The notes beneath the pieces were generated by a model, which was not told the DNA's origin, searched no databases, and saw only the letters and a list, made by a program, of their open reading frames with translations. Of a DNA stretch of 64,000 nucleotides, positions 3,637-50,359 are shown piece by piece. The stretch lies in sequence record MW749003.1. One strand, 5' to 3'. The position numbers and the translations under genes were made by a program. Every line of letters starts with the position of its first letter. Position 1 is the stretch's first letter.

Positions 3637-3649
3637 AAATATATATTAT
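3637..3649 (+). promoter_or_regulatory. Early promoter 13-mer AAATATATATTAT
   Basis: Exact copy of the repeated intergenic motif, upstream of 3734. Confidence 0.7.
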
Positions 3650-7084: not shown

Positions 7085-10000
7085 ATGCCAATGAGAGTAT
7101 TACCAAAATTCGTTAAGAATGTAGGTAAATCACTTGGAAGATCAACAGCTTCAGCATTTGGTGATATGATGCCTAGTATGAAGAATTCAGGTATTGATAG
7201 TAAAAATTATATTGCTGAAGTATATAATTCTTCCAGAGAAAAAGTAACTCCTAATGAAGTTAAACAGACCTACATTTATAAATCTGGTCAGCAATTAATT
7301 AATAATGCAATTAGAGATCTTAAATCAGGTAATTTCTATAATAAAGAAAGACAACAACAAGCATCTAATGATTCTTTCAAAGAGATGTTTGGTATTGATT
7401 TAGATAATCTTACTAATTTTGAAGATCAAAATAAAGAAACAACAAAAGAAAAAGATGGAAAAACTATTCACAATACCAGTAATAACACTCAACAAAATGT
7501 TTTTGTGAATAATAGTGATCCATCTACTTCTAAAAGCATTCAGCAATTAACAACTATTTCATCTTCAGCTATGAAGATGAGTCATTATAATTCTAGTGCT
7601 TTGAGTAAACAAATTTCTACATTAATTGAATTCCAGCATAATAACACTAACAGATTCTATACAGAGATGTCAAGTAAAATGGCTGATATTACAAGAGATG
7701 TTAGTCAGATGACCGGATTCCTTGGTGTGATGGCTGAGGTTTCAGTAGGTGGAACTAGAAGAACACAAGGCGAGTCTATGCTTGCAACATTATTAGGGTT
7801 AGAAGGATTTAGTGTTAGTGGAATGAAGGATATGTATAGGAAAAAATATTCTAATTCTACTGGTGGAATGAAGGATACATTTAATCTTGTTATTAAACCT
7901 TATATTGATGAAGTTGTTGCAAATCCAATTGGGGCTTTAACTAAAAATGCAATTAAGTTAGCTTTACCAAGAGCTTTAAAATCAGCTGTTGGTGATATGG
8001 ATCAAATGTTTAAATTTCTTCCTACTATGATTCAAGGAAAAGCTAAAGATTGGGAAGGTAGTGATAATGTCTTTAAGAGAAATGCCGCTAAAATATTTGG
8101 CATTGATCTAAAAGAAGATAAGGGATTTAACTTTTCTAATTATGAAAAAGGAAAGGTAGCATTTGATGGTGTAACTAGACGTTCTATTGTTAATGTAATT
8201 CCATCATTGTTATCTAAAATTTTGGCTAGTGTTAGCAATAATTCAACTCATAAAGAAGAACTTATCTATGATTATGATAAAGGAAAATTTACTACTAGAA
8301 AACGTGTAATAAAAGAAATGAATAGTGATATTAAAAACTTCACTATTGATAACTACGATCTTACTAATTATAAAGAACAGATTGCAAGAGAGAATCAATC
8401 TAAATTTTCAAGTAGTGAAGAATTATCTGCTTTTATGGAAAGAGTTGATAAAGCTCTTTTATCCATGGTTAAAAATAGCAAAATGATTCATGGTAATAGC
8501 AAGGCATCTGATATTTCGGAGGACGAAGATGTTGCTAATGCTATCTTAAATAACTTCAAGGGTCAAACAAATGCTAATAAGTCTAAATATCAATATGACC
8601 TACTAAGTGCTTCAAAAGCTTATTCTGATATTTATAGAAGAATTGAGCAAAATGAATCATTTAATAATGCCTTTGATATGACAAAAGAAGAAAGAATATT
8701 TGAGCCTGAAACTAATAAAGAAATGGCTAGAAGGGTAAAATCAAATATTGATAGATTCTTTGGTGTTGGTCAAGGACCAGTAGAAAATAATATGAGTAAA
8801 AAGAATCCTCTTTATTGGTTAACTGAAGGTATTAAGAGAGTTAATGGAAAAACTTCTGAATTTTTTTATGGTCAGGATAATAATGAATATGCATATACTA
8901 GACCTCAACAACCTTCTTCTAATCAGCAAAATACAGTAAATAGAGGATCTAAGATAAAAGATTTTGCTAGTAGAGTAGTAAATACAGGAAGTAATGCTAT
9001 TTCTAAATTAAATACAAGAAATGGTTTAATGCCTGAGAGAAGAACTTCGCCTTCAATTCCTGTTATTTCAAATACTGAGGATACTAGTAGTAATAATACA
9101 ACAAGAGAATTAAGTAATTTAAATCAAAATATTGAAGAAGTAAATAATGAAATTAGTGGAGATAGAGGTATCACCAGAAGCATCTTCCTGTTAAATAGAA
9201 ATATTGAACGTAATAATAGGATTATGGAAGGTAGAAATGATGAGAAAACATCCTCTTCTACTAATTCAACTGCCATTAGAACTACGAATGTACAAAACCC
9301 AGATCTTTCCATTCTCCCTAAGATTAATGATAATATTCTTCATATTATAACATTACTAGAAGCTAAATTTAGTGGAGATGGCTTACCAATAGGTAGGATT
9401 GGAAAATTCAAAAATATTATTGGTAGTTATAAGGATAAAACTCTTAATTTCTTTGAAAAGTTATTTGGAAGAGGAAGATCTAATTCAGGAGGTTTCTTCT
9501 CTAGAACAGCAGAAAAAGTTAAAGGCTTTATTGGAATGGTATTTGGTAATTCAGGTTCCAGAACTTCACTTTTATCTAAATTATTTGGTGGTGCAATGGA
9601 TTCTATTAGAGGTGCTAATGGAAGACAATCTATTACATCAAGACTTCTAGGAAGAGATGGCATTATCACCAAGTTTGTTTCTGGTACGTTAACAACTGTT
9701 TTGGATGTTGCGTCTAAAACAATTCCAAAAGCAACTAAATTTGCAGGAGAGGTAACAAAAGGATTTTTAAATTTTGGTAAAAGTGCTTTTTCACTAATAC
9801 TTGGAGCAGGTAAAAAAGGATTAGATAAAGCTAAAGAACTTCGATCAAATAGATCTGCAAGTAGAGCAAGAAGAAGCGGAAATAGAAATATTAAAGGAAT
9901 GAGAGGCTTACTTGGTCTTTTAACAAGTACTACTGGGAGTGTTATAGGAGGAGCAGGTAGCCTTATTGGTGGAAGCTTAAGCCTTGGTATGAGAGGCATT

Positions 10001-12850
10001 TCAAAAGTAGGAGATATCGCTTCAGGTATTGGTAATAAACTATCTGGTCGTAAAGGGCATAAAAAAAGTAAATCTTCTTCTAATAGAAGATCTTTTTCAA
10101 TGCCAGATATTTTAGATAGAGTATTTAATCGTAAAAGTGATTCACTGCATGTCTTTGTAGATGGCGGTTCTCTAGATAAAATCCGAGAAGTAGTTAAGGT
10201 TCAGACACATATTAGTGATGGAAACTCTGCAGTAGAACAAATTGCAGAATTTAAAAAAAGACGTCAAAATAATGAAAATAGCCTTCTTCAAAACTTAAAA
10301 GGTGGTAGAAAGAAAAGAAATAGAAATAACCTTACAGGTGAACAGTCTTCTGGTGGAGGTTTCTTAAGCGGAACACTAAGTAATATTGCAGGTGATATTA
10401 TTGGTGAGGTAATTGGAAATAAAATTGCTGGACGTGGAGGAAGAGATACTGGTACTAGAGCTGGAAGAAGAGCTGGACGGAGAGGAATCTTTGGTAGAAT
10501 TGGCGGTCTCTTTAATCGCAATAGAGGTGCATCTGAAGCTATTGAAGGAGCAACTGATCTAGCACAAAACTCTACTAGAATGGGAAGAAATCAAGCAACT
10601 GGACGAGGAATTAGAGGTATGTTCAGTCGAATTGGTGGAGGATTATCTCGTCTAGGTGGACGAGGAATGGCAGGAATTGGCGCTTTAGGTACTGGTGCTG
10701 GATTGGCATCTGGGGGTGCTGGTGTTGCTCAAGCCGCAACTACAGGAGCATCAGCGGCTACTACTGCGGCAGGTGCTAGTGGAGTAGCAGGAGCGGCTTC
10801 TGGAGGTGCTAAAGGACTTCTTAGAGGAGCTGGAACAGCACTTAGAGGGGCAGGTAGATTAGCAAAATTCATTCCAGGAGTAGGATTAGTTGCTACAGCA
10901 GGAATGGGTGTTATGGATGCTATTAATGGCGTTCAGAACGCTAACCAAATATTTGGAACTGAAAAAGCTACTTTGGGACAAAAAGTATCTGCAGGAGCAG
11001 GTAGTGTTATAAGTGGACTTACATTTGGTTTAGCTGATAAAGAAAAAGTTTCAAAAGGGATTTATGGATTTGGTAACAAGATTAAAGATTTTGGTTCAAA
11101 AGCATTAAGTACAGTTAAGAAAAATCCTTTATTGCTCGCCGGAGGTATTGGTGGAGGATTAGGATTAGGTGCTTTAGGACTTTCTAAGATGTTTGGAAAA
11201 AAAGAGGATGAAGATCAAAAAAGAGATGCTGAAAAGGGAGAAAACAGTAAGCAACCTATTAATAAAATCTCTGCTTGGGTCGAAAAACTAGGTAAATTCT
11301 TCTCAATTGGTGCTGGTGGTACATTCTTTAGTGGTATCTGGGGAATGATTACTGGTAAAACAGGTGGTATCTTTAATAAGATTGGTAACTGGTTTAAAGG
11401 CTTATTTGGTGGAGGAAAAGATGATAGTAATTCAGGTGGCGATTCTTATACTGGTAAAATTGGTTCTGGTATTGGAGCACTAGCCGCTAAATATGAGTCT
11501 AGTGGTAATGCTGGAACGGTAGCAAATAGTTCTGGTGATATTGGTGGGCAATCATTTGGTAAATATCAACTTGCAAGAAATACTGGGTCTTATAAATCTT
11601 TTATTAATAAGCTTAGTGATTATGGTCATGAAGACTGGGAAAAACAATTAAAAGCGGCTTATAATAGTACCTCTCAAAGTGCATCAGTATGGAAGAAGAT
11701 ATATAAGGAAAATCCAAAAGAATTTGAAAAAGTTCAGGATCAATATTTTGCAGATCAATATTTTAGACCAGCGGCAGGTAAAATCAAATCTGCAATTGGT
11801 TTAGATGTTGGTAAACGTTCTACGGCTGTTCAAGCGGCATTATTATCTACTGCTGTTCAACATGGAACTGCTGGTGCTGTTAATGTTTGGAAAAATGCAC
11901 TTGGTAGTAAAGCAAATGATATGTCTGATTCTGAGATTATCAATGCAGTCTATAAAGAGCGTGCGGCTAATAATGGTATGAAATATTTCCCTAGTTCTTC
12001 TGCCGCTATTCGTAAAGGCGTTGTGAACCGATTCTCAAGAGAGAAAAAAGATGCATTAGCAATGTTAGCTAAAGATGGTGGAGAAAAAGCAAATACTTCA
12101 TCTGATAGTGATAAAGATACAAAAGATTCTTCAACAACAGGTTCAACAGCGTCTAAGGTTATGAATGATCGCAGTCAATTTTACGATAATCCATTTAACT
12201 CAGCTTCTTCAGGTGGAGGCTATACAAATAGTACAGCAGGTTATGACTCAGCACCTTCTTCATCATATAAGAGTATTGGTGGATTTAGTCTTGGTTCATC
12301 TGCTGGAAAAGCATTAACTTCTGGTTCTGCATATGTGGCAAATTTACTTTCAACATCTGATAAAGCAATGGGAGACTTAAGATGGTCAATTGGAAATAAT
12401 ACTATTTCTAAAGCAAATAGTATTAAGAATAGCTATCTAAATTCCAATTCTTCAAGTAATCCATTTTCTGCATTAGGAATTGGTACTGGAACAACATCAA
12501 ATATTAAATCAACTGCATCAAGTTCATTAGTAAATCCATTAAGCTCTATTCCAAAACTTTCAAGTTCTTCTTCAGAAAGTAACACTGGAAGTACTATAAC
12601 TGGAAATGATTTTACTGAAATGCTTAAGAACTCTGATGAAATTGCTCAAATGCAAAGTATTCTTAAACAAATTAATGAGAACAGCAAACAAGGAAATAGT
12701 ATTCTGGCTAAGATGCTTGAAGCCATTATTGATATTAGAGATAATAAAAGTTTTGGTGGAACAACAGTAGTCAATAATACTTCTTCAGGTTCAAATTACA
12801 GTTCTTCAAGTATTTCTCCAGAGACAGATAGTATGTTAAAGGGTTATTAA
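7085..12850 (+). CDS. Tail tape-measure-like protein with a C-terminal lysozyme-like domain
   Basis: 1921 aa; Gly/Ala-rich hydrophobic stretch; KYESSG...GGQSFGKYQL...AVQHG muramidase-like motif. Confidence 0.75.
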   Translation: MPMRVLPKFVKNVGKSLGRSTASAFGDMMPSMKNSGIDSKNYIAEVYNSSREKVTPNEVKQTYIYKSGQQLINNAIRDLKSGNFYNKERQQQASNDSFKEMFGIDLDNLTNFEDQNKETTKEKDGKTIHNTSNNTQQNVFVNNSDPSTSKSIQQLTTISSSAMKMSHYNSSALSKQISTLIEFQHNNTNRFYTEMSSKMADITRDVSQMTGFLGVMAEVSVGGTRRTQGESMLATLLGLEGFSVSGMKDMYRKKYSNSTGGMKDTFNLVIKPYIDEVVANPIGALTKNAIKLALPRALKSAVGDMDQMFKFLPTMIQGKAKDWEGSDNVFKRNAAKIFGIDLKEDKGFNFSNYEKGKVAFDGVTRRSIVNVIPSLLSKILASVSNNSTHKEELIYDYDKGKFTTRKRVIKEMNSDIKNFTIDNYDLTNYKEQIARENQSKFSSSEELSAFMERVDKALLSMVKNSKMIHGNSKASDISEDEDVANAILNNFKGQTNANKSKYQYDLLSASKAYSDIYRRIEQNESFNNAFDMTKEERIFEPETNKEMARRVKSNIDRFFGVGQGPVENNMSKKNPLYWLTEGIKRVNGKTSEFFYGQDNNEYAYTRPQQPSSNQQNTVNRGSKIKDFASRVVNTGSNAISKLNTRNGLMPERRTSPSIPVISNTEDTSSNNTTRELSNLNQNIEEVNNEISGDRGITRSIFLLNRNIERNNRIMEGRNDEKTSSSTNSTAIRTTNVQNPDLSILPKINDNILHIITLLEAKFSGDGLPIGRIGKFKNIIGSYKDKTLNFFEKLFGRGRSNSGGFFSRTAEKVKGFIGMVFGNSGSRTSLLSKLFGGAMDSIRGANGRQSITSRLLGRDGIITKFVSGTLTTVLDVASKTIPKATKFAGEVTKGFLNFGKSAFSLILGAGKKGLDKAKELRSNRSASRARRSGNRNIKGMRGLLGLLTSTTGSVIGGAGSLIGGSLSLGMRGISKVGDIASGIGNKLSGRKGHKKSKSSSNRRSFSMPDILDRVFNRKSDSLHVFVDGGSLDKIREVVKVQTHISDGNSAVEQIAEFKKRRQNNENSLLQNLKGGRKKRNRNNLTGEQSSGGGFLSGTLSNIAGDIIGEVIGNKIAGRGGRDTGTRAGRRAGRRGIFGRIGGLFNRNRGASEAIEGATDLAQNSTRMGRNQATGRGIRGMFSRIGGGLSRLGGRGMAGIGALGTGAGLASGGAGVAQAATTGASAATTAAGASGVAGAASGGAKGLLRGAGTALRGAGRLAKFIPGVGLVATAGMGVMDAINGVQNANQIFGTEKATLGQKVSAGAGSVISGLTFGLADKEKVSKGIYGFGNKIKDFGSKALSTVKKNPLLLAGGIGGGLGLGALGLSKMFGKKEDEDQKRDAEKGENSKQPINKISAWVEKLGKFFSIGAGGTFFSGIWGMITGKTGGIFNKIGNWFKGLFGGGKDDSNSGGDSYTGKIGSGIGALAAKYESSGNAGTVANSSGDIGGQSFGKYQLARNTGSYKSFINKLSDYGHEDWEKQLKAAYNSTSQSASVWKKIYKENPKEFEKVQDQYFADQYFRPAAGKIKSAIGLDVGKRSTAVQAALLSTAVQHGTAGAVNVWKNALGSKANDMSDSEIINAVYKERAANNGMKYFPSSSAAIRKGVVNRFSREKKDALAMLAKDGGEKANTSSDSDKDTKDSSTTGSTASKVMNDRSQFYDNPFNSASSGGGYTNSTAGYDSAPSSSYKSIGGFSLGSSAGKALTSGSAYVANLLSTSDKAMGDLRWSIGNNTISKANSIKNSYLNSNSSSNPFSALGIGTGTTSNIKSTASSSLVNPLSSIPKLSSSSSESNTGSTITGNDFTEMLKNSDEIAQMQSILKQINENSKQGNSILAKMLEAIIDIRDNKSFGGTTVVNNTSSGSNYSSSSISPETDSMLKGY

Positions 12851-12867
12851 TAGAGAGGTGATTTATT

Positions 12868-15800
12868 ATGGCAGATGAACAGCAAAACGTTGATGAACAA
12901 CAGTCACAGATAATTGGAGATGAGTTTTTCCAAGAAGGTAACTCTAATTCAGATTCAAAAGGTGGATTTGGAACAAGTGTAGAATATACTGACGGTTTTG
13001 AAGCATTAATTGGATCTTCTAAGGGTGGTTCTGGTTCTTATGCTACACCTACATGGAATCCATATAAATCAGATAGTGTATTAGGCTTACCTTTATACTA
13101 TAATGATTTAGCGGATCCTTCGGGAAGAGTATATAATCAAACCATTATTCAAGATATTCCTAATATATACATGGTTCCCGGAATTCCATCTATTAATAGA
13201 AATATGATTGACGTAGCAGGAAAACGTATTATTCCTGCTACTCTTTCTCGTGCATTAATGGATTTTCAAAATAATCCAAATAGTATTTTTAATTTTGGAG
13301 TTAGAGGAGTAAAAAGTGGTAATGACCTTCGTTTCATAGGGTTTAAAGCAGATTATTCTGAATACTTTAAATATGTACAAACTATGTTAAGTACTATACA
13401 TTCATATATGGCAATGGATGGCATATTTGATTTATATAGATTCTCAGATGACTTTAATAATAGTTTTAAAAATTATGGATTATGTTTTTATGCAGATAAA
13501 TCTACAACTATTTCTGAGTCAGCTGATAATACTTATGCGGCTTCTAGAACAGCAGAAATGGTAAGTGAGAAAGCGGCTACTTTAAGGGAAGCAGATTTAT
13601 TATATCCTACAGGAAGTACAACATCTCGTATTGTTGACTCAATTAAAGCGGCTAATCCAATTGGTGTACTAGAATCATTAGGTTCATTTGATGGAATTAT
13701 CACTCGTACATCAAATGCTTTATTTCGTGTTGTAAATGGATCACAATTAATGTTCCCTGACTTTTGGCAAGATTCTAGATTTGATAAATCTTATAATATT
13801 AGTTTCAAATTTTATAGTCCTTATGGTGATAGAGAAAGTATATTTAGATATGTGTATGTACCTTTTATAGCACTATTAGCATTAGCATTGCCTTAAATGA
13901 CGGGGCAATTAAAACTCTTTTAACTGCTGGAACATCCTTAGAGCTTATTAGACTACAACGTGACTGGTGACAGTGAGCGTGAATGTTTAAAAACTAATAA
14001 GATTGGACAATCAGCAACTAGTTAAAACTTCCATCATCCCATTAAACATAGTATTAATGATTAATGAAGGCGGGATGATTTACTTGGTTAAAAGGAAAAC
14101 TAATGAGGAATTCTTAAAAGAAGTATCTGACAACTATAATGAAGAATACACTATTTTATCAGAATATAAAAATGCTAGGACAAAGATCTCTATTAGACAT
14201 GAAAAATGTGGTGAAGTATATGAAAGAAGACCAGACTCTATAAAAAATATCACATGTAAATCTTGTTCAAGGAGAAAATATACACATAGTGACATTATTA
14301 AAAGAATCAAAGATATTGTTAGTGATGAATATACTTTATTAGGTGAATATACAACAATGGAAAAACCTACTAAAATGATTCATAATCTTTGTAACTATGA
14401 GTGGAATGTAAAATTACATCATTTTATTAATAACGGTACAAGGTGTCCAAAATGTTTTGGTAATGTCAAGAGAAATACAGAGTCTTATAAAAAAGAAGTA
14501 TATGATCTTTATAAAGATGAATATTCTGTATTAGGAGAATATACTGATACACACTCGCCTATTAAAATGTATCATAATGTATGTAATTTAGAATTTGAAG
14601 TACGTCCTAGTGATTTTTTAGGTAGTCATATGCAAGGCTGTCCTAAGTGTAAAGCTTCTAAAGGCGAAAGACTAATAAGAAATTGGTTGTCAGAGAATAA
14701 TATTTCATTTGAAGAACAAGTTAAAATGGATGGACTTAGAAATAAGATTCCACTAACATTTGATTTTTTCTTACCTGATCATAACACTGCTATTGAATTT
14801 GATGGAATTCAGCACTTTAAACCTGTTAAAAGGTTTGGCGGTGAGGAAAGATTTAAAATTCAGCAGAAAAGAGATTCTATTAAGAATCAATTTTGTAAGG
14901 AAAATGAAATAAGGTTAATAAGAATACCATACTTTAAGATAAAAAATATTAGTTTAATCCTTTCTAATTTATTGGAAGTTACTAGCTCAACGACTATCGA
15001 AACCACATCATTTGATGGAAGGAAGTAGAGTACCCCACAAGCGTGGTTACATTTAGGCATAAATGTAAGTATAGTAAACTAATACTATATGGGAAACAAA
15101 GAGCATGATGAAGGCAAAAAGCTGGAGTGAAGATATAGTCTCAACTTCTATGGAAACATAGAGCAGTTCATAAGAGAACGCACTGAAGTAGCGACTCAGT
15201 GGAAGGTTATGCGTCAAGACGGTTTATTAGGATATCAGCAACCATTTTTTGTGAGAATGTCTCGTCCGGGTTAACTAAATAGCTCGGCTTATGAGTAATC
15301 ATAAGAAACAATCATTCTCTAATTGCTGGAAAGTCTTAACATGTTGTGATGAAGATAATCAGCAGCGAAGATTATTAGTTTTAGATTGTGTAATAAAAAA
15401 TTATATCAATAGTAAAATAAACAAAATAATAATTTATTATTTTGGAGTTGGTATGATGAAAGCACTTACACATAAAGAAGTAAAAGAATATATTTATACA
15501 GTAACTAATGGTGAATATGAATTAATTAATGAATATGTGAATGACAAAACATATATTACGCTAATTCATAATAAATGTGGAAAACAGTATAGTACGAGGT
15601 TTAGTTACTTTAAAAGAGGAGATCGACATACTTGTTGGAAGATCACTTGTGATGAAGATTTTGTTAATAAAGTTAAAAAACTTGTTGGAGATAAATATAC
15701 TTTTCTCTCCCCTTTTGAGAAATCCAGTATTAAAATTCCTTGTAGACATAATGATTGTGGGTACATTTGGGAAATTACACCTAATAATTTTATTTCAAAA

Positions 15801-16769
15801 GGATGTCGATGTCCTAAGTGCAAGTCAGCTATTCCTCGTGGAGAAAAAAATATAATTAAATGGTTAGAAAATAATCACTTTGACTATGAACACCAATTCT
15901 CTTTTAAAGATTCATCTATAAAAAATCTATCATTTGACTTTAGGGTAAAGTTAGACGATAATAAGTTTGTTCTAATTGAGTTTGATGGTGAACAACATTA
16001 TAAACCAAAATTCGGTGATGATGGAAGGGAATTTAAAAAACAATTAGAACGTGATAGAAATAAAAATAATTATTGTAAGATTAATAATATTCCACTTTTA
16101 AGAATACCATATAAATATAGGGATACTGTTGATATAATTCTAGAAGACTTCTTTACTAATAATAACGTTCAACGACTATCCGAAAGTAATCGTTAGATTA
16201 TGAGTAGCCTAAAAATAGGCAATAGGAGTACGGCTCAAGTGTTTGGAGTGGGTGAAAATCCCTTAAATGGAAACGGGAATCCCCTCTTTAGAGAGGGTGA
16301 AGATATAGTCTCATCTCTATGGAAACATAGAGCAGTTCATAAGAGAACGCATTAGATGTAGCGAATCTAGTGGAAGATAATGTATTTTGACATAGATATG
16401 GGAGTAGTAACAAGTTTGACTATTACTAAAGGCGGAGCTGATAGTCTTTGGACAGTTGACGGTCATCCGCAAATGATTGAAGTTAATATGAACGTAGTAG
16501 ATTTATATCCACAAATGATCCAAATTAAAGATATTGGTTTACTTGCATATAATCTGGGAATTGCATCATTCTTAGAAAACATGGCAGGAATAAGACCAGA
16601 CCAATTAAGTTTTCTTAAATTTAAATCATTAATTAATAGAAAACTATCAAATTCATTATTATTTACTACTTTCCTTGATGGAGGTTCAGGAATTAAAGAT
16701 AGAGTTGGTAACAAATTTGCTGACTTCTTCTATGAACTACAAGGTAAGTTTAATAATATATTAAGATAA
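12868..16769 (+). CDS. Spliced baseplate/tail-tube-fold virion protein, 490 aa; exons 12868-13893, 15212-15271, 16383-16769
   Basis: Joining the exons gives ...LLALALP|RQDGLLGYQQPFFVRMSRPG|YFDIDMGVVTSLTITKGG..., in frame with no stop. Confidence 0.85.
13894..15211 (+). mobile_element. Group I intron 1 (1318 nt)
   Basis: P1 with U13893-G13903 wobble; P10 TGACG pairs with exon-2 CGTCA; core AACTGCTGGAA, AATCAGCA, TCAACGACTA, AAGATATAGTC; terminal G15211. Confidence 0.92.
14075..15028 (+). CDS. Intron-encoded homing endonuclease (Zn-ribbon repeats plus Vsr/DUF559-like PD-(D/E)XK domain)
   Basis: HxxC..W...RCPKC repeats; LTFDFF..AIEFDGIQH; start codon uncertain. Confidence 0.8.
   Translation: MIYLVKRKTNEEFLKEVSDNYNEEYTILSEYKNARTKISIRHEKCGEVYERRPDSIKNITCKSCSRRKYTHSDIIKRIKDIVSDEYTLLGEYTTMEKPTKMIHNLCNYEWNVKLHHFINNGTRCPKCFGNVKRNTESYKKEVYDLYKDEYSVLGEYTDTHSPIKMYHNVCNLEFEVRPSDFLGSHMQGCPKCKASKGERLIRNWLSENNISFEEQVKMDGLRNKIPLTFDFFLPDHNTAIEFDGIQHFKPVKRFGGEERFKIQQKRDSIKNQFCKENEIRLIRIPYFKIKNISLILSNLLEVTSSTTIETTSFDGRK
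15272..16382 (+). mobile_element. Group I intron 2 (1111 nt)
   Basis: P1 CCGGGT/GCTCGG with U15271-G15282; P10 AAATA pairs with exon-3 TATTT; core AATTGCTGGAA, AATCAGCA, TCAACGACTA, AAGATATAGTC; terminal G16382. Confidence 0.92.
15453..16196 (+). CDS. Intron-encoded homing endonuclease, same family as in intron 1
   Basis: RBS GGAG at 15444; CRHNDCGYIW...RCPKC; LSFDF..LIEFDGEQH. Confidence 0.8.
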   Translation: MMKALTHKEVKEYIYTVTNGEYELINEYVNDKTYITLIHNKCGKQYSTRFSYFKRGDRHTCWKITCDEDFVNKVKKLVGDKYTFLSPFEKSSIKIPCRHNDCGYIWEITPNNFISKGCRCPKCKSAIPRGEKNIIKWLENNHFDYEHQFSFKDSSIKNLSFDFRVKLDDNKFVLIEFDGEQHYKPKFGDDGREFKKQLERDRNKNNYCKINNIPLLRIPYKYRDTVDIILEDFFTNNNVQRLSESNR

Positions 16770-16774
16770 ATTAA

Positions 16775-16803
16775 GAAAGAACCTTTATTTAGGTTCTTTC
16801 TTA
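16775..16803 (+). terminator. Terminator after the spliced gene
   Basis: AAGAAAGAACCT / AGGTTCTTTCTT stem. Confidence 0.65.
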
Positions 16804-16871
16804 ATTAATACAATTCTAAATTCCTAACTTTTAAAGAATATGCCTAACAGATTAATAGAAATTAAATCTGA

Positions 16872-17486
16872 TTGGAGGTAGAATTCTTGGCATTTAAAAA
16901 AGGTAGTATTTCACAAACTACCAAATCGCAAAAAAAGAAATTAGAAAAAATTAAAAATACTGAAATTGAGTTAATAATTAATGAATTAGATGATAATCAA
17001 GTAGTAGTTAATATTAACATGAATAGCATAATAGAACCATATGTAAGAAATAGATTGGCAGGTAATTCATCACATCTATATGATCCATTAAATACTTATA
17101 AGAAACAGATAAGACGAAAATTAAAAGAACAACTAGAAAATTATGAAAACTTTAAAATGGGAGAAGGTAAAATTACTTTCATTATTGATGTATATACTGT
17201 TCCACCTAAGTCATTTACAAAAAGACAGCTAGTATATGCTATATTTAAAAGAATTATAAGACCTATTGTTAAACCAGATTTAGATAATGTTGCTAAAACT
17301 GCAATGGATGTTTGTTCTAAATTATTTTGGAAAGATGATAATCAAGTAGTAGAACTCAAAGTGAGAAAATTTTATGGGGAAAACCAAGCAACTTATATTA
17401 AATTTTACATGGATTTAAAGCCAGATGAAATTCGGGGAAGAGCAAATGAGGAGGAAAATGAACTATGGAAAACGCTAAATCTTTAG
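16872..17486 (+). CDS. rusA: RusA-like Holliday junction resolvase
   Basis: KPDLDNVAK...FWKDDNQVV motif; true start may be TTG 16887; late motif 16846-16857. Confidence 0.85.
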   Translation: MEVEFLAFKKGSISQTTKSQKKKLEKIKNTEIELIINELDDNQVVVNINMNSIIEPYVRNRLAGNSSHLYDPLNTYKKQIRRKLKEQLENYENFKMGEGKITFIIDVYTVPPKSFTKRQLVYAIFKRIIRPIVKPDLDNVAKTAMDVCSKLFWKDDNQVVELKVRKFYGENQATYIKFYMDLKPDEIRGRANEEENELWKTLNL

Positions 17487-17971
17487 CGGATACATCAAAG
17501 TATCTCAACCAAAGTGATATTGAAAATATTGTGAAAGTAAATAAAATTAAAAAGGATATTACTAGTTTTTTTGATATGGATTTATTCATCAATAAGATGA
17601 GAGATATTATTGATGAATCTGAACATTTTGACTTTAGAAGTAAAACTTCACGATTATATATTGAAAAAGAAAGACCAAATTTTATTTTAAAATATGTATC
17701 AGATGAACTAACAAATAAAATTAATTCTGTACAAGGTTCTGATCCAGAAGAAACTGAGTCAATTCAAATTGATATTATTACTGAATACATCTTTAATGAT
17801 GTTATCTCTAAATTTTCTACTTTTGTTACTGATTGTATTAAAGACACAGAAAAATTAAATGATTTATTTTCAGATATTCCAGATGATATCAAAGATATTC
17901 TAATTTCAAATATTTATACAATTAGACCTGATATCAAGGGAAATAACATTCAAGTACTTTATTTTATTTAA
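17465..17971 (+). CDS. Hypothetical protein
   Basis: ORF overlapping the rusA stop. Confidence 0.65.
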   Translation: MENAKSLADTSKYLNQSDIENIVKVNKIKKDITSFFDMDLFINKMRDIIDESEHFDFRSKTSRLYIEKERPNFILKYVSDELTNKINSVQGSDPEETESIQIDIITEYIFNDVISKFSTFVTDCIKDTEKLNDLFSDIPDDIKDILISNIYTIRPDIKGNNIQVLYFI

Positions 17972-50286: not shown

Positions 50287-50359
50287 TGGGATATAGCCAA
50301 GTGGTAAGGCAGCATGCTGTTAACATGCCTATTCGTATGTTCGAATCATACTATCCCAG
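50287..50359 (+). tRNA. tRNA-Asn (GTT), CCA not encoded
   Basis: Acceptor TGGGATA/TATCCCA; anticodon arm GCATG-CTGTTAA-CATGC; T loop TTCGAAT; late motif 50184-50195. Confidence 0.9.

Follow-up and report, generated by a model that had tools for sequence, protein, structure and literature searches.

Four open reading frames (ORFs) lie at 12868-13896, 14003-15028, 15291-16196 and 16380-16769 of a 64,000-nucleotide (nt) stretch of sequence record MW749003.1 (hereafter the window, in which a position equals the record position minus 62000), and the question raised by this locus is whether they are separate genes or pieces of a single one. The record annotates four separate coding sequences (CDSs) here (genes 85, 86, 87 and 88), without a splice, the product of gene 87 being labelled 'putative homing endonuclease'. 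The 3902 bases concerned are those of Bacillus phage vB_BspM_Internexus (100% identity), a member of the genus Takahashivirus in the AR9/PBS1 group of jumbo phages. A preliminary description of this DNA had also seen the disconnected frames, which we confirm, and had joined them into a virion structural gene split by two introns. As detailed below, the locus is very probably a single virion gene, presumably expressed late and orthologous to AR9 gp204, in which two group I introns surround a mini-exon. Direct support for this comes from the intron boundaries, the RNA helices, the matches to the ribozyme core, the presence or absence of each intron in relatives, the match of the joined protein to AR9 gp204 at every residue, and the folds of the host protein and of the intron-encoded one.

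Splice sites and ribozyme core

The whole split gene (12868-16769, forward strand, as are all its parts) consists of exon 1 (12868-13893, 342 codons), intron 1 (13894-15211, 1318 nt), a mini-exon (exon 2, 15212-15271, 60 nt or 20 codons), intron 2 (15272-16382, 1111 nt) and exon 3 (16383-16769, 128 codons and the stop). The exons measure 1026, 60 and 387 nt, every junction is in phase 0, and joined as they stand they encode 490 amino acids (aa) with one stop, at the end, just as the preliminary description had predicted for a product assembled through a 60-nt mini-exon. Both introns begin with an in-frame UAA (13894-13896 in intron 1) and finish with an in-frame AUG (16380-16382 in intron 2, the start chosen by gene callers for the last piece), and it is because of these intron-edge triplets that callers see an ORF stopping at the end of an exon and a next 'gene' beginning three bases early.

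Intron 1 is preceded by a U (13893) and ends in a G (15211). Its P1 helix and internal guide occupy 13888-13908, where the exon end UUGCCU (13888-13893) pairs with GGGCAA (13903-13908) at six of six positions, including the U.G pair at the splice site, and where the P10 guide UGACG (13898-13902) pairs with CGUCA at the start of exon 2 (15212-15216) at five of five. Intron 2, with a U at 15271 and a G at 16382, has a P1 of CCGGGU and GCUCGG (again 6/6 with U.G) and a P10 of AAAUA and UAUUU (5/5). At the DNA level intron 2 could be placed one base further to the right, as a T follows both junctions; a U before the 5' site together with a terminal G is found only in the placement of the preliminary description.

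The Rfam model of group I introns (Intron_gpI, RF00028), used to scan 12500-17200, matches intron 1 at 14956-15163 (36.8 bits, E-value 6.5e-7) and intron 2 at 16073-16332 (45.7 bits, E-value 1.4e-9). The ORF-less orthologues of these introns in phage AR9 match the full model from P1 onward, intron 1 reaching 56.1 bits (gathering score 50) and intron 2 reaching 47.7 bits (E-value 8.6e-10). In both introns the strands of P3, P4, P6, P6a, P7 and P9 are complementary throughout, and the same holds for P5a of intron 1 and for P2, P5 and P8 of intron 2, although these helices were first taken from the Rfam alignments and then checked on the window, and the result for the core helices partly restates the Rfam match. 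In intron 1 orthologues from two metagenomic contigs, 71-75% identical, P1, P5a and P9 are kept through compensatory changes on both strands; one contig (L010) shows a G-C to A-U compensatory change in P1. Phage Goe21 retains CGUCA despite differences in exon 2 one and four bases further downstream. The Rfam matches and the complete P1 and P10 pairings bear out the group I identity, the U-G 5' sites and the P10 helices that had been proposed.

Each intron carries its ORF in the P6a loop, as mobile group I introns normally carry theirs in peripheral loops. To judge from additional hairpins that lie between P7 and P3', both introns may belong to subgroup IA, the usual one for phage introns. No further copies of either intron were found in the window. 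The blocks spanning J8/7, P7 and P9 (15127-15180 and 16297-16350) match stretches of 35-57 nt, at 88-100%, in Staphylococcus, Enterococcus, Vibrio and Pseudaeromonas phages, which looks like a widespread intron core motif and not like common descent of those phages. A group II intron, an intein and a simple frameshift or pseudogene were also considered as the nature of the inserts and rejected, the insert ends being of group I type, in phase 0 and without a frameshift. An RNAalifold prediction on three sequences gave a non-canonical consensus with intron 2 misaligned with intron 1, and was discarded.

The two introns break the coding sequence at points 60 nt from each other, both of them highly conserved codons. 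In the mechanism that we propose, each intron, once transcribed, would fold in such a way that its internal guide pairs with both the end of the upstream exon (P1, with its U.G) and the start of the downstream exon (P10), and two transesterifications would then excise the intron and ligate the exons. Ribosomes on unspliced RNA would be halted by the in-frame UAA that forms the first codon of each intron. We infer that the introns are self-splicing in Internexus. Mature mRNAs have been determined experimentally for split genes of AR9 (10.1101/2020.12.14.422802).

Intron states in related phages

AR9 gp204 (YP_009283109.1, BI022_gp204, 'virion structural protein') is annotated in RefSeq as a CDS joined from three pieces, and the joined Internexus protein is identical to it at 490 of 490 residues. 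AR9 and PBS1 have the same gene as Internexus, with the same two insertion sites and the same 60-nt mini-exon. Unlike Internexus, which keeps both nuclease genes and has its splice unannotated, AR9 and PBS1 are missing 935 nt of the P6a loop in intron 1 and 628 nt of that in intron 2, and hold no intact nuclease gene: in AR9 and in both PBS1 records the two introns are kept and only the equivalents of 14038-14972 and 15432-16059 are gone, both within P6a loops. Since some 90 nt from the 3' part of the nuclease coding sequence persist in AR9 intron 2, outside every core helix, the ORF-less introns probably arose by deletion. The ORFs annotated in AR9 intron 2 are only 144 nt and 156 nt long; the first opens at the ATG of the window frame that begins at 15291, so that this one at least looks like a remnant of the nuclease gene. 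In one PBS1 record (NC_043027, L004 2669-3187, compared with window 14973-15431) intron 1 is about 60 nt longer than in AR9 and in the other PBS1 record (LC680884). The BLAST pieces overlap there and cover window 15088-15165 two times, a hint that the intron core region contains a short tandem duplication or was assembled differently.

The introns are not present in all close relatives. Goe21 has intron 1 with its ORF and lacks exactly 15272-16382, so exons 2 and 3 form one 450-nt ORF. In L006, a Logan contig from SRR29716578 whose exon 1 is 99% identical to that of Internexus, both introns are absent and the three exons are contiguous. The splice coordinates that had been predicted for both introns thus prove exact to the base, given the extent of these absences and the identity of the joined protein with AR9 gp204. 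In the records of Internexus, Goe21 and PBS1, the gene pieces are listed as separate CDSs and 'hypothetical proteins', and the mini-exon is missed.

L006 differs from Internexus at 20 of 1362 nt, and 17 of these 20 differences are silent. Six of them cluster around the intron 1 site, no more than 9 nt from it (P about 2e-8), at or beside the bases that pair in P1 and P10. A seventh difference in the intron flanks affects the final base of exon 2, where Goe21 likewise has an A. None of these seven alters an amino acid, and the translations of L006 and Internexus match over 15 codons on either side of the junctions and throughout exon 2. This pattern could have arisen either because the intron carried its own exon flanks with it or because the empty allele drifted, or was selected, away from the nuclease site.

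The site of intron 1 is occupied across a wide group. Four exon 1 homologues that are 61-71% identical (P0003, P0007, P0008 and P0013) end at the residue of the exon 1 boundary, and the contigs carrying them hold introns at that point: an ORF-bearing one in L007, an ORF-less one of 406 nt in L010 (without intron 2) and one recognised by a 47-bit Rfam match in L008. Among the relatives compared, intron 2 was found only in Internexus, AR9 and PBS1. The 60-nt stretch between the two sites occurs in four states in near-identical phages: empty on both sides, with a nuclease-bearing intron 1 and an empty second site, with two nuclease-bearing introns, and with two introns from which the nucleases have been deleted.

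The predicted spliced product and its probable place in the virion

About 30 uninterrupted homologues of 445-522 aa, including Bp8pS_264 of Bacillus phage BpSp, are colinear with the joined protein across both intron sites. The profile of PHROG 20401 is covered by exon 1 over positions 1-340 and by exon 3 over 361-472, and the gap of 20 positions left between them (341-360) corresponds to the mini-exon. This short exon encodes six of the 38 residues that are invariant in 30 homologues (Q344, Y350, P353, F354, P361 and G362).

Searches of the 490-aa protein against Pfam and NCBIfam gave no match. A profile built from the 30 homologues and compared with the PDB finds gp182 of phage phiKZ (9xqs_K, PHIKZ182) with an E-value of 1.8e-22 over residues 210-413, both intron sites being crossed without a gap, and the 'tail tube initiator complex protein gp203' (11lx_H) with an E-value of 6.7e-21. 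The third PDB match (36za_rp, E-value 5.9e-21) is named 'Capsid decorator gp77', at odds with the baseplate names of the other two, which may be a naming issue in that entry. In phiKZ, six copies of gp182 form a 'spacer' ring between the tube initiator ring and the hub, their beta-sheet domains making a 24-stranded barrel (PMC13250141). The Internexus gene resembles gp182 in its surroundings as well, as both adjoin a giant tail lysin gene: the split gene is directly preceded by one for a 1921-aa tail lysin/tape-measure-like protein. By contrast, gp182 is 664 aa long, its N-terminal part is left unaligned, and we found no report of introns in its gene.

Structure prediction points the same way. 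In the AlphaFold model of the 490-aa protein the predicted local distance difference test (pLDDT) score is 74-86 over most of residues 310-400 and 62 at 341-350, and the predicted beta-sheet domain takes its strands from all three exons (304-316, 355-360, 364-378 and 393-402). For this model Foldseek ranks 9xqs_L and 9xqs_K highest and next returns tube-initiator chains from contractile injection systems, P1 and T4, and a fold search of BFVD returns many matches named 'baseplate tail tube cap / gp48'. The AR9 and PBS1 records label the protein a 'virion structural protein'. The tail-tube fold and baseplate role that had been assigned to the gene are supported: profile and predicted fold support a homologue of phiKZ gp182 with a fold like that of the T4 gp48 tube cap, likely to sit at the centre of the baseplate.

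The putative intron-encoded nucleases

The ORFs of the two introns, which we call HEG1 (14075-15028, 317 aa from the ATG at 14075, in a frame open from 14003) and HEG2 (15453-16196, 247 aa from the ATG at 15453, in a frame open from 15291; gene 87 of the record), are paralogues of one another (34% identity, E-value 1e-32). Both match PHROG families labelled as HNH, homing or intron-encoded nucleases (E-values 1e-20 to 1e-88). The last 18 codons and stop of HEG1 overlap the 3' strands of P6a and P6, the 5' strand of P7 and the 3' strand of P3.

HEG1 has three zinc modules of the type H/C..CxxC followed by a C-terminal Vsr-like nuclease domain. Its family is very large, with 32,017 cluster representatives at E-values up to 0.001, and the best 150 of these relatives are 318-1041 aa long with 1-9 matched stretches each, which suggests that the number of repeated modules varies among them. 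In an alignment of 28 relatives, the repeated N-terminal modules contain invariant or near-invariant H and C pairs, and in the C-terminal domain D230, E241, H247 and D267 are invariant, E198 is nearly so and K270 is invariant or near-invariant. The structure model of HEG1 (pLDDT 88.9) is matched by Foldseek to the Vsr protein of Escherichia coli (1cw0_A, probability 1.00, target template modelling (TM) score 0.51; 1vsr, probability 0.99, TM score 0.55) and to other Vsr-like/PD-(D/E)xK nucleases. The E-values of the Vsr matches are weak (0.016-0.058), because the whole protein was used as the query.

Searches of PDB sequences with each intron ORF and with the 28-sequence profile found no nuclease, I-Bth0305I (3R3P) included, and 3R3P is absent from the top 50 fold matches of HEG1. 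Pfam gives the intron ORFs only a weak match to DUF2726 (E-values 0.007-0.0095) and weak matches to treble-clef and zinc-ribbon families. I-Bth0305I, the EDxHD nuclease of a Bacillus-phage intron (PMC3239194), nevertheless offers a parallel in kind, having a C-terminal Vsr-like domain; the acidic and histidine residues conserved in the HEG1 family may be counterparts of its composite E, D, H, D catalytic set. It differs in that its ORF interrupts P5 and not P6a, the loop that holds HEG1 and HEG2, and in its N-terminal NUMOD/helix-turn-helix region, in place of which HEG1 has tandem zinc modules. We regard HEG1 and HEG2 as putative Vsr-like intron nucleases and do not file them under EDxHD, because they show no sequence match to I-Bth0305I and because their DNA-binding part is different. 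Each P6a-loop gene would then encode a site-specific nuclease with tandem zinc modules and a Vsr-like PD-(D/E)xK domain, which presumably cuts intron-less alleles in co-infecting relatives, the intron being copied in during repair. The silent differences that gather at the intron 1 site of the empty allele speak for such cleavage only indirectly.

The motif of AR9 late promoters (AACA-N6-TA, PMC5312081) occurs at 14045-14056 and 15420-15431, respectively 19 and 22 nt upstream of the likely HEG1 and HEG2 starts. Over the full window it is no commoner than expected by chance (108 occurrences against 119 expected), and its positions are only a hint that the nuclease genes might have promoters of their own. 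The consensus of AR9 early promoters was not found in the split-gene region with 0-1 mismatch, a single match with two mismatches lying in HEG2 (15547-15559). A scan for sigma-70 promoters and terminators is uninformative here because the phage has its own RNA polymerases.

Weighing the alternatives

Several results weigh against a gene with two working introns. Rfam scans of the whole window, at gathering and at E-value thresholds, recovered neither intron; both introns score below the gathering score, intron 2 remaining just below it even in its ORF-less AR9 form; the AlphaFold model of the 490-aa protein is of low confidence overall (pLDDT 56.5); and gp204 is absent among the AR9 rows listed in the accessible part of the supplementary table of intron-bearing phage genes in PMC11878797. 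The low scores in the window can be attributed to the long ORF inserted in each intron, and the empty whole-window scans to search filters combined with these inserts and not to a lack of introns.

If the inserts were simply free-standing nuclease cassettes, the locus would yield unspliced fragments of 342 aa and 129 aa that assemble non-covalently. The separate CDSs of the Internexus, Goe21 and PBS1 records agree with this, and the AUG at the end of each intron (with GGAAGG 5 nt upstream of the one at 15209) makes the downstream pieces resemble ORFs with starts of their own. This reading would leave the group I core matches, the P1 and P10 pairings, the U.G pairs and the terminal Gs without explanation. 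It would also allow the 20 residues of the mini-exon, six of them invariant, to exist only as part of a detached 21-aa peptide begun at AUG 15209, and it fits poorly with a predicted beta-sheet domain that draws on three exons and with the single chains encoded by intron-less alleles and distant homologues; we consider it extremely improbable. An equally slim chance attaches to real introns of which one or both splice poorly in Internexus, for instance on account of the large ORF inserts, leaving the gene impaired or dependent on a helper. The window introns do score below their ORF-less AR9 forms in Rfam, and some phage introns are reported to leave the transcript in infected cells but not in vitro (PMC11878797). 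Against poor splicing, however, the intron core segments are 99.0-99.6% identical to those of AR9 and all helices checked are intact. An ORF in a peripheral loop is no anomaly in a mobile group I intron, and the ORF-bearing intron 1 is likewise retained in Goe21 and in contig L007. Internexus, moreover, is a viable isolate, and the protein is among the conserved components of the baseplate core.

Skipping of exon 2 would be compatible with the split gene as we read it. Intron 1 would supply the 5' half, and intron 2 the 3' half, of a hybrid core that links exons 1 and 3, with a 470-aa isoform or a means of tuning protein dosage as the outcome. All junctions are in phase 0, the P7 strands are identical between the introns, an 81-nt block at their 3' ends is 91% identical, and skipping has been reported in Twort orf142 and in a gene of SIOphi (PMC11878797). 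The preliminary description was correct in its arithmetic that the skipped product would be in frame at 470 aa. Skipping would, however, take out the best-conserved stretch of the protein, with all six invariant residues encoded by the mini-exon and one predicted beta-strand, and the P10 guide of intron 1 pairs with the start of exon 3 at three of five positions, compared with five of five for its own exon. That skipping is put to use in either of these ways is, in our estimation, very unlikely. We give only a little more credence to the idea that the hybrid core skips exon 2 in a sizeable share of transcripts, with the ratio of full-length to skipped mRNA setting the amount of working spacer protein and the exon-specific P10 helices restraining the process; that P10 helices suppress skipping at all is speculation. 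As six of the 38 invariant residues would be lost, a working 470-aa isoform is unlikely, and we judge the skipped product to be a by-product at best.

Comparison with other phage introns

Only a minority of phage introns lie in structural genes (PMC11878797, PMC12908238), and the preliminary description was right to that extent in calling the present case unusual. It is less exceptional than was implied, given the precedent of Twort orf142 and the many split genes of AR9-type phages (10.1101/2020.12.14.422802). Twort orf142, from a Staphylococcus phage, encodes a tail tube protein and is interrupted by three group I introns; exon skipping was shown for it experimentally (Landthaler & Shub 1999, as cited in PMC11878797), and the skipping idea derives from it. 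Like the Internexus gene, it codes for part of the tail of a large myovirus of Firmicutes and holds several group I introns at short distances; it is nonetheless another gene in another phage family, and skipping in Internexus is speculation. No endonuclease is listed for the orf142 introns in the accessible part of the supplementary table of PMC11878797. The lysin intron of Streptococcus thermophilus phages, with its deletion derivatives (Foley et al. 2000, again as cited in PMC11878797), provides a parallel for the allelic states, as one site is found there in ORF-bearing, internally deleted ORF-less and empty forms. It differs in gene, host and nuclease, and in being a single intron rather than two introns 60 nt apart.

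Surrounding features of the window

A perfect 16-bp hairpin (16769-16806, forward strand, -20.4 kcal/mol, z = -5.9) overlaps the end of the stop codon of exon 3 and is likely to be a transcript-end structure. Elsewhere in the window, the 13-nt early-promoter consensus of AR9 (PMC5312081) is present in nine exact copies, at 3637, 23033, 37162 (reverse strand), 43018, 45371, 48434 (reverse strand), 52221, 55196 and 62285 (reverse strand). The sole RNA family at gathering threshold in the window is a tRNA gene at 50287-50359 (60.6 bits in Rfam). In contig L010, from a distant relative, the gene that follows a RusA-like resolvase (8506-8892) has the Pfam domain Acb2_Tad1_hairpin, an anti-CBASS/anti-Thoeris sponge fold; its counterpart in the window, by position only, is a 168-aa ORF at 17465-17971.

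Conclusion

The three-exon structure of this gene is already known from the RefSeq annotation of AR9, and as gene structure the locus is for that reason of little importance. What is new is that both Internexus introns keep an intact nuclease gene, that three records leave the splice unannotated, and that near-identical phages display four allelic states. Because the splice and the mini-exon were missed, databases carry truncated entries of 342 aa and 129 aa for a conserved baseplate protein. The four allelic states, along with the silent changes at the empty site, form a compact natural series for tracing the gain, decay and loss of two adjacent mobile introns, each independent of the other.

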